Below are positions 22,987 through 26,206 of a stretch of DNA of 64,000 nucleotides, piece after piece. The notes under the pieces are model-generated. The model did not search any database. It was not told where the DNA came from and saw only the letters and a program-made list of their open reading frames with translations. Each line of letters opens with the position of its first letter. The first letter of the stretch is position 1. The stretch lies in NCBI RefSeq assembly GCF_016432865.1, contig NC_067403.1:254076001-254140000 (forward strand), given 5' to 3'. This DNA is from Antechinus flavipes. Taxonomy: Eukaryota. A program made the position numbers and the translations under genes.

Positions 22987-23294
22987 ACAATGGGACTGAG
23001 CCAGAATATATGGTGCAGGGCTCCTCAAAAACAGATCCAGGGATCACACCCACCTGTCCCACCCCAGGTCACCACACAGAATTGATGGAACAAAGTCAAA
23101 GAGAATTCAAAAGTTTATTTGCAAACAATGTAATGGGGGGAGGGGTCCAGAAAGAGTGAATGCCATCTGTCTGCAGGGCTCCCACATTCATCTTCTCATA
23201 TAGCAGTTCCTTCAAAGAAAAAAAAAAAAAAAAAAAAAAGGCCCATGAGGACAGGCACTCTCCCAAATGGACCCTTAGAGGATCAAACCAGAGG

Positions 23295-23420
23295 CCCCTC
23301 AGTCAGTTCCCTCTGGAACGCAGTCTCCTCCTGCCTCCCAGCCTGCCCCAGTGGGTTCAACCTTTGCAGGTTCTGGGGCAAGGTCAAGGAGTAAGACAGG
23401 TGATGTCTTCTTCATTGGGA
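23295..23420 (-). ncRNA. SNORD22: C/D snoRNA U22, copy a (intron 10)
   Basis: TCCCAATGAAGA...TGTCTTAC...GAACCCACTGGG...GTTCCAGAGGGAACTGACTGAGGGG, 126 nt, collinear with recalled human U22. Confidence 0.93.
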
Positions 23421-23593
23421 TCCTCATTGATCTATCACTCCCCCCCAGGATCCCATGGCAAACACTTACCTGCAGAAGTTTCCTGCCCACTGCCAGCATC
23501 AGAGGTTTCACCTGTGGAAAAGAAAAAAACTTGAAACCTCCTGAAGCCCTGTCTTTAGGTACCCAAGGATGCCAGGTCCCAGGGGCGAGCTTG

Positions 23594-23658
23594 CCACTCA
23601 GAACAACCTATCAGTCACAGTCATCAGACTGGGGCGGTATTAATCTCATCACTAGTGG
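23594..23658 (-). ncRNA. SNORD31: C/D snoRNA U31 (intron 9)
   Basis: C box GTGATGA, guide AATACCGCCCCAGT before D' CTGA, D box CTGA, terminal stem CCACT/AGTGG. Confidence 0.93.
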
Positions 23659-23845
23659 GAGCAGGCCTTTGGGCAGGAGGCAGACTGCAGCCTACTGCTG
23701 GAAGGGGAAGCTCACCTGCTGCCAAGGATGAGGATCCTGTACTTGTGTCCTGCTCCATGACAAGCGGCCAGAACCTGAAACGAGTTGGTTTGTTATTGTT
23801 CCCCCAGCCTCGCAAGGCCAGTTTTGCCCCCAGTGGCCCTCCATT

Positions 23846-23917
23846 TCCTGGTCAGATAGGTACATCTCAACAAGGGGGTTCAGCCGAACGAGATTCTAGG
23901 AACACATCATATCAGGA
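23846..23917 (-). ncRNA. SNORD30: C/D snoRNA U30 (intron 8)
   Basis: Guide GAATCTCGTTCGG plus D' CTGA, variant C box ATGATGT, D box CTGA, stem TCCTG/CAGGA. Confidence 0.9.
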
Positions 23918-24110: not shown

Positions 24111-24180
24111 GTTTCTCAGATGTTCAAGCCTTTTCATTTTATATGAATCATAGTGAGCTAGTTAGATTCATCACTGAAAC
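24111..24180 (-). ncRNA. SNORD29: C/D snoRNA U29 (intron 7)
   Basis: C box GTGATGA, guide AACTAGCTCACT before ATGA, D box CTGA, stem GTTTC/GAAAC. Confidence 0.93.
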
Positions 24181-24414
24181 TGAACCCCAAGATGTTCCCC
24201 AAAGACCAAAATGAATCAACCACTTGGGGAACCTTCTAACCCTGGTTAGAAGGGAACCTAACCCTTCTTGGGGTTAAGAAATAACCAACTAACCTTTTCT
24301 TGAGAAACTGCCAGTTAAGGGGAGGGAGTCATGGTCGAGCCTAAAAGAGAAATGTCCAGTTTAACCAAGCTGCCTCCTTCCAAATCAACTGAGCTTTGTA
24401 TTGTCTTAAGGGTG

Positions 24415-24540
24415 TACCTCAGACTGTTCCTTCTGGAACAAAGCATCCTCCTCTCCCCCAGCCAGCCCCAGTGGGTTCACCATTGCTGGCTCTGGGGCCA
24501 GGTCTGGGGTTAAGACATGTGATTGCTTTCCTCATCGGTA
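24415..24540 (-). ncRNA. SNORD22: C/D snoRNA U22, copy b (intron 6)
   Basis: TACCGATGAGGA...CACATGTCTTA...GTGAACCCACTGGG...TTTGTTCCAGAAGGAACAGTCTGAGGTA, 126 nt, stem TACC/GGTA. Confidence 0.9.
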
Positions 24541-24698
24541 CCAGGGGGATCCCAAAGCCTATGAGTCTCAGAGACTACTTACCATGGTGATCTCATCCCG
24601 AGGCAGCCATAATCAGCATTCCCCTGACAGATAAAACAGTAATTGGGTTAGGAAATGCCTTAAGCAAGGACGGCTAAGGGGGCGCTGTAGTCCCCTAT

Positions 24699-24791
24699 GG
24701 TTGATCAGGGCTTTGGTGACTCAAAAGAATGCCATAAGACACATGTCGTCCATTAGATAATGGGCTCATACCCACATCATCAACTCAAACC
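24699..24791 (-). ncRNA. Additional C/D snoRNA in SNHG1 intron 5 with a 14-nt 18S rRNA guide (not U22 or U25-U31)
   Basis: C box TTGATGA (24783-24777), D box CTGA (24708-24705), bulged terminal stem GGTTTGA/TCAACC. Guide GAGTCACCAAAGCC abuts box D and is complementary to 18S GGCUUUGGUGACUC. The 3' end lies 75 nt before the 3' splice site. Confidence 0.8.
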
Positions 24792-24959
24792 AAGGGTTCA
24801 CAGATAGGCAAGGCAAATGGCGCGGGACTCCGAAGGAGAACTTACTTAGTAAGGAGAAAGGTGAAGGTAGCACGATCTGGGAGATCTGGGAGAGAGGGAG
24901 GGAAATGGGTGGGTCAGAGGGCCCAAGGCTGAGGCAGAAACTGTTGGACCAACAGGAGC

Positions 24960-25036
24960 TGCCATCAGAACTCTAACATGCTTTAAGAATGCTGGTCCTC
25001 ACAGAGCCTCAGGAGGTAGGATTCAAATCATCTGAC
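24960..25036 (-). ncRNA. SNORD28: C/D snoRNA U28 (intron 4)
   Basis: GTCAGATGATTTGAAT...AGCATGTTAGAGTTCTGATGGCA; both ends match recalled human U28. Confidence 0.93.
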
Positions 25037-25234: not shown

Positions 25235-25307
25235 CCACCTCTCAGAAAAAAAGATGACATCAACAATACTCAGCCATATGCTTGTCATTAAAAATTCATC
25301 ATTGTGG
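25235..25307 (-). ncRNA. SNORD27: C/D snoRNA U27 (intron 3)
   Basis: C box ATGATGA, guide AATGACAAGCATATGG plus CTGA (18S Am27), C' TGATGT, D box CTGA. Confidence 0.93.
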
Positions 25308-25513: not shown

Positions 25514-25588
25514 GCTGCTCAGGACGTAAGGCTTTCTCCACTGATGCATCAGAAAGAGAGAATTCAAAGTCCAGATCATCCTCGCAGC
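25514..25588 (-). ncRNA. SNORD26: C/D snoRNA U26 (intron 2)
   Basis: GGATGATC...TTCTCTCTTTCTGATG...AGTGGAGAAA...CTGAGCAGC, collinear with recalled human U26. Confidence 0.9.
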
Positions 25589-25762
25589 TCACCCACGGAG
25601 ATACCCCTCCCCTAGCCCCGAGCAGTGGCTCCCCCCACTCACCCGAGGCATGGGAACATCCGGGCACCCCGCACCTTGCTCAGCCATGGCGCCCTGCAGA
25701 AGAAACAGCCAGTTAAGAAGGGACTGGGAACCCCCGGAGGGAAGGGGCAGGGGGCGCAGGCT

Positions 25763-25832
25763 CCTTCTCAGAAGGTTTTCTTTTCCTCACAGAGTCTCAG
25801 CACAGGTCTGTGAAAGGGATCATCACCGAGGG
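25763..25832 (-). ncRNA. SNORD25: C/D snoRNA U25 (intron 1)
   Basis: C box GTGATGA, guide TTTCACAGACCTGT before CTGA (18S Gm1490), C' GTGAGGA, D box CTGA. Confidence 0.93.
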
Positions 25833-26206
25833 GCCTCGCCCCCACCCCTCCCGGGAACCATCCGTTACTAGCGTGGGTGCGCCTAAGGGCAGCTCCGGCG
25901 CCTAACCTAGCAGATGCGCCCGGCACAGGGGGAGCCCCAATTAAGGGCTGTCTGCACAGCGCTCGGCCCCCATGCCCTGGCACCGGCCTTCCCGGAGATT
26001 GGGTGGTGCGCATGCGCGCCAGGTTAGAAGGGGGGGCGGCTGCGGCGTCCTCAGAGACCCCGGGGAGGGCCCGCTTATTTAGAGAAAGAAGTAGTTAAGA
26101 GAAAGAAACCCATAGAAGCCGAACGAAACTAAGTTCAAAATGTGTCCTCCCTCACCTACCCGCCAAAAAGCCACAAGTAACTCACTCACCGCTGGCGACA
26201 AAAGAG

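Follow-up and report, generated by a model that had tools for sequence, protein, structure and literature searches.

The SNHG1 host gene in the window analysed here, a stretch of 64,000 nt from the genome of Antechinus flavipes, raises the question of what is encoded in an extra intron situated between SNORD28 and SNORD22, and on which RNA the product would act. An earlier sequence-only reading had proposed an intact intronic box C/D RNA at 24699..24791 (the bounds are retained here), unlike U22 or U25-U31 and directed to 18S rRNA. Ribosomal RNA modification maps are often taken as fixed across vertebrates, with lineage-specific sites being reported species by species, and the locus is of relevance to snoRNA evolution as well as to ribosome heterogeneity. 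Judged from its boxes, stem and guide, all read from the sequence, and from its kinship with a frog RNA, the candidate is very probably a functional intron-encoded box C/D snoRNA, the orthologue of xtmg18S-U252, and would most likely guide formation of 18S-Um286. The type of molecule and its mechanism would be wholly conventional.

The host gene is oriented on the minus strand, as are all features of the candidate, and it contains ten snoRNAs, nine of which have Rfam matches while the candidate is the tenth. In minus-strand order the nine are SNORD25 (25762-25833), SNORD26 (25514-25587), SNORD27 (25238-25307), SNORD28 (24960-25036), SNORD22 (24414-24540), SNORD29 (24111-24179), SNORD30 (23847-23914), SNORD31 (23593-23659) and a second copy of SNORD22 (23294-23420). 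The candidate has in common with the classical SNHG1/UHG set (SNORD22 and SNORD25-31) the host gene, the arrangement of one snoRNA per intron, the box C/D class and the spacing of 74-75 nt to the 3' splice site. It differs from them in its greater length (~87-93 nt, as compared to 67-77 nt for the classical SNHG1/UHG snoRNAs), in its placement in an extra intron, and in lacking both sequence similarity and an Rfam match to any member of the set. In the human gene, Tycowski et al. 1996 reportedly found none at the corresponding place.

The Rfam comparison suggested by the sequence-only reading was carried out at several levels of stringency. No family was found for the candidate when the whole window was searched at the gathering threshold, nor when 5.5 kb were searched at E values up to 10. 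Likewise, the 151 nt around the candidate gave no match to SNORD22 or SNORD25-31 at E up to 10, the best match being the plant family snoR69Y (14.9 bits, E 2.7). The candidate was also aligned locally with each of the nine other snoRNAs of SNHG1; all scores fell inside the range obtained with shuffled sequences (z ≤ 1.3), and we reject the idea that it arose by recent duplication of one of them. In combination, the lack of an Rfam family and of similarity to the nine neighbours identifies the candidate as a distinct gene, and the claim that it is an intact C/D RNA unlike U22 and U25-U31 has thus held up. A search of JGI metagenome contigs for guide and D box (18 nt) returned 13 matches, which are attributed to chance because they reside in bacterial-looking contigs and none has a C box upstream. 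The guide string was not found in the SnoBIRD supplements, nor in the supplements of a chicken snoRNA catalogue, whose 18S sites leave a gap from U171 to U389 and which lists no UHG snoRNAs.

The organization of the candidate is that of a box C/D RNA, with a C box near the 5' end and a CUGA D box near the 3' end. The C box UUGAUGA (24777..24783; core UGAUGA at 24782..24777) departs from RUGAUGA in carrying U at the purine position (R position, 24783), and the D'/C' boxes are degenerate. The D box (24705..24708) is unchanged in four other organisms and in X. laevis. The two boxes are joined, in the manner of a kink-turn, by a terminal stem of 11 bp with two single-base bulges and a duplex energy of -11.2 kcal/mol, the 5' half (24785..24796) pairing with the 3' half (24693..24704), which has no variants among the organisms compared. 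C box, D box and stem, all noted in the earlier reading, were confirmed. Just after the C box there is an internal hairpin with a GGG/CCC core (24760..24775) that is conserved with frog; RNAfold assigns it -7.5 kcal/mol, as against -5.1 for the aligned frog segment, which has the same stem and another loop. The block UGGACGACA (24744..24752) is identical in frog, shows no variant among the organisms compared, and is possibly a degenerate C' box (gGAcGA). A U-rich spacer separates this block from the 14-nt antisense element GAGUCACCAAAGCC (24709..24722), which lies directly 5' of the D box and occurs once in the window. The minimum free energy fold of the RNA was no better than that of shuffled sequences (z 0.22) and is uninformative, as is usual for C/D RNAs.

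The host intron (24624..24845, 222 nt, with GT at 24845-24844 and AG at 24625-24624) was delimited from the ends of transcript contigs. Logan contigs of four RNA runs from four organisms (A-D) were aligned to 24545-24955, a stretch which by design leaves the flanking SNORD22 and SNORD28 outside. The contigs break off precisely at 24623 and at 24845, with overhangs that carry the opposite exon, showing that the spliced junction exists. The upstream host exon (24846..24885) is seen in contigs from organisms D and C covering 24845-24888, with three ambiguous CAG letters, and the downstream exon (24583..24623) in contigs covering 24582-24623 that are joined to the next exon, ending at ~24339. A branch-like CCUAAC (24652-24647), with the putative branch A at 24648, precedes the 3' splice site by 24 nt. 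The candidate ends 75 nt short of that splice site and ~51 nt from this putative branch A. The earlier reading had noted that this distance resembles that of the neighbours, and the corresponding values are indeed 74 nt for SNORD28 (24960 to ~24886) as well as for the first copy of SNORD22 (24414 to ~24340). The positional optimum for intronic C/D RNAs in vertebrate and mammalian cells, reportedly described by Hirose and Steitz in 2001, places them ~70-80 nt ahead of the 3' splice site, a range which includes the 75 nt observed here. In the assembled contigs of the four runs, the form in which depth was available, coverage is flat over the candidate and its intron flanks alike.

The same alignments provided a check on conservation. 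Pooled over the four other organisms, the snoRNA displays 3 differences in 331 positions as compared to 43 in 401 for the intron flanks; the p value of 4e-9 obtained by pooling exaggerates their independence, since organisms A-D have common ancestry. Taken separately, organism C differs at 1 of 93 snoRNA positions (1.1%) and 17 of 129 flank positions (13.2%, one-sided p 0.0005), organism B at 2 of 93 (2.2%) and 13 of 68 (19.1%, one-sided p 0.0003; its contig is unalignable upstream of 24685), and organism A at none of the 52 positions covered (0%) and 9 of 75 (12.0%, one-sided p 0.007). The near-identical organism D has no difference in the snoRNA and four in the flanks (one-sided p 0.11). In organism A, seven differences fall in the 41-nt downstream exon, which is thus less conserved than the snoRNA; intronic snoRNAs being conserved while exons are not is the classic pattern of snoRNA host genes. 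The three changes within the snoRNA affect the C box (at its R position), the U-run spacer and a poorly constrained 5' region, and a further change in organism B, at 24792, concerns the outer part of the terminal stem. Guide, D box and inner stem show zero variation in all organisms compared. The C box change is a C at 24783 in organism B, and the frog homologue discussed below has AGGAUGA; GAUGA is therefore the invariant core of the C box. These data reveal that purifying selection acts on the candidate snoRNA.

The sequence-only reading had further claimed that the 14 nt preceding the D box are the exact complement of vertebrate 18S rRNA. With the target taken from published 18S primers of pig (NR_002170.3) and human, which contain the complement of the guide, this is what is observed: a perfect 14-nt match adjoining the D box, within the 10-21 nt typical of an antisense element, with all 14 pairs formed between GAGUCACCAAAGCC and 18S GGCUUUGGUGACUC and a duplex energy of -25.3 kcal/mol. 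The D+5 rule places methylation on the nucleotide opposite the fifth guide position. Here the fifth nucleotide from the D box is opposite the middle U of CUUUG, and the predicted target is thus human U286, equivalent to X. laevis U252. We take GGCUUUGGUGACUC to occupy positions 282-295 of human 18S, a count which also recovers the established Nm positions in the stretches A27 to C174 and U428 to A468. The offsets between frog and human fit as well (X. laevis A163, U252 and U393 being human A166, U286 and U428, respectively). The count, and with it the U286 given in the sequence-only reading, agrees with the human-numbered SSU-U286 of a zebrafish study (PMC7668251). As a side observation, a chicken qPCR pair labelled HMBS (PMC5893744) has as its forward primer the target-containing 18S sequence GGCGGCTTTGGTGACTCTAG, and the label is probably a slip.

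The possibility had been raised that the candidate corresponds to one of the non-eutherian snoRNAs of Xenopus, and this proved to be the case. Delhermite et al. 2022 assigned a 78-nt X. laevis guide to 18S-Um252 in their S3 Table (PMC8797249); the X. tropicalis guide is named xtmg18S-U252, after Deryusheva, Talhouarne and Gall 2019/2020 (PMC6984369). The candidate is identical to the X. laevis guide at 63 of 78 positions (81%). When guide and D box were removed the homology stayed, with a local score of 39 as compared to 12.4 +/- 2.1 for shuffled sequences, none of 2000 shuffles reaching it (z ~12). The similarity thus extends beyond guide and D box and is not due to chance, so that, at the level of sequence, the candidate is a homologue of the X. 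laevis Um252 guide and xtmg18S-U252. Both RNAs have AGUCACCAAAGCC followed by CUGAUC in the same register, both carry, downstream of the C box, the GGG/CCC hairpin and block UGGACGACA, and both predict the middle U of CUUUG, with 13 of 14 guide nucleotides in common. They differ in the C box (UUGAUGA in the candidate, AGGAUGA in frog), in the length of the guide (14 nt here, 13 in frog) and in the spacer preceding it, which is 5 nt longer in the candidate. The RiboMethSeq score of 18S-Um252 in X. laevis is 0.32-0.34, and 0.26 at stage 45 (PMC8797249). The equivalent position is called unmodified in human cells (PMC8797249), which bears out the earlier remark that the site is not known among the human 18S Nm sites.

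Similarly, zebrafish provides a counterpart to the site. In Ramachandran et al. 2020 (PMC7668251), SSU-U286 (+5) and SSU-U287 (+6), in human numbering, are methylated, and the pair is attributed to a single SNORD that modifies at both +5 and +6; the novel SNORD200-204 have no Rfam matches, and the authors link U286/U287 to the folding of 9es3b-c. The zebrafish pair is in the exact register of the candidate guide. The responsible SNORD (one of SNORD200-204) has in common with the candidate the target site, the +5 register and the lack of an Rfam match, the difference being that zebrafish methylates the +6 neighbour U287 as well. Site and guide family are accordingly already published for frog and fish, and the candidate is not a new kind of molecule. 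Guides of this sort have been treated in the literature as Xenopus-specific or non-human, and the zebrafish study calls its sites zebrafish-specific (PMC7668251). Outside the supplements of the key papers, the literature searched contained no report of a Um286 guide in a mammal or in SNHG1.

The sequence-only reading had left two histories side by side: marsupials either retained a guide that placentals lost, or acquired one of their own. The homology with Xenopus favours the former and disfavours the latter, and on the comparison with frog we favour a guide retained in this genome and lost in the placental lineage. We infer that, in this species, the RNA is processed to a stable form, assembled into a snoRNP and active in methylation, by a route that would run as follows. 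Upon splicing of the SNHG1 primary transcript, the C/D kink-turn, ~50 nt upstream of the branch point, would bind SNU13, NOP56, NOP58 and fibrillarin, and exonucleases would trim the debranched intron back to the snoRNP-bound RNA. The 14 nt 5' of the D box could then form their duplex with 18S GGCUUUGGUGACUC, which lies at the base of expansion segment 9es3, and there fibrillarin would methylate the 2'-OH opposite the fifth guide position (human U286), possibly together with U287 as in zebrafish. With only about one third of the frog site methylated, the modification may be substoichiometric here too.

We lean, by a small measure, towards a wider proposition: the frog guide and the zebrafish site would represent one ancient vertebrate snoRNA function, surviving in an extra intron of mammalian SNHG1 and placing Um286 at the base of 9es3 in marsupial 18S, while guide, intron and methyl group would have been lost together in placentals; the candidate would then constitute the first mammalian record. 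The locus ties a guide considered Xenopus-specific and a site considered zebrafish-specific to a copy under purifying selection in a mammalian SNHG1, and would turn two isolated observations into a dated history of gain and loss, with presence in fish, frog and this apparent marsupial and absence from the human and mouse maps. It would also offer a natural test of the role of the methyl group at the base of 9es3.

The partial methylation of the frog site, only ~0.33 at every stage, would also suit a conserved snoRNP acting mainly as a folding chaperone of pre-18S at the base of 9es3, with methylation as a minor or dispensable by-product. The link of U286/U287 to 9es3b-c folding, made in the zebrafish study (PMC7668251), speaks for such a role, as does the conservation of the whole RNA, including the internal hairpin and the block UGGACGACA found in frog. 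However, the duplex abuts the D box in the exact methylation register, frog and fish do methylate the site, the former at +5 and the latter at +5/+6, and no sequence feature sets a chaperone apart from an ordinary guide, which makes a predominantly chaperoning RNA rather unlikely. The stretch running from the C box to mid-RNA, conserved with frog and with no target assigned to it, could in turn hint that the actual target is a different site in rRNA, or else an snRNA or mRNA, the 18S match being secondary. This region folds as a hairpin, however, and is not situated upstream of a recognisable D' box; among long antisense elements, the one for 18S is alone in adjoining a D-type box, and it is invariant from frog to this genome; a target other than 18S therefore seems extremely doubtful.

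It is also conceivable, albeit very improbable, that the candidate is a relic: a once-functional guide, now unprocessed or inactive, which would look intact owing only to the short time elapsed or to an overlapping splicing signal. No discrete RNA is visible in the flat depth of the assembled contigs, and the C box is off the RUGAUGA consensus at its R position; human SNORA29 (PMC6984369) illustrates how a snoRNA can be conserved yet unexpressed after a single box mutation. Against this, divergence reaches 12-19% in the intron flanks, and in the host exons too, of organisms whose snoRNA differs at 0-2% of positions. Its boxes, its guide and its stem remain intact, and its spacing from the 3' splice site matches that of the working neighbours. 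The C box of the frog homologue is likewise non-consensus, yet the frog site is methylated. The evidence thus continues to point to a working guide for 18S-Um286 as the most likely identity of the candidate.

A few further features of the host gene were observed. The second copy of SNORD22 (23294-23420, Rfam 118.6 bits) is full-length, lies downstream of SNORD31 and has ~80% identity to the copy at 24414-24540; to our knowledge, the human host gene has one U22 only. The Rfam scores of SNORD25 (23.9, gathering threshold 39) and SNORD30 (33.8, gathering threshold 40) are below threshold, and threshold-based annotation would miss both orthologues. Rfam-based annotation pipelines will likewise miss a snoRNA such as the candidate in non-placental genomes. 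A Pfam search of ten long upstream ORFs returned a weak WD40 match and nothing else. One contig of run X23 joins exon 24583-24623 (window 24593-24626) directly to ~25127, in the exon upstream of the SNORD28 intron. This isoform skips exon 24846-24885, and SNORD28 and the candidate would then reside in one common intron. The same run, from organism D, displays at 24607, in the downstream host exon, a 1-nt deletion that accounts for roughly half of the contig depth. An allele or a paralogue could explain it, and in a non-coding host the deletion would be without consequence.
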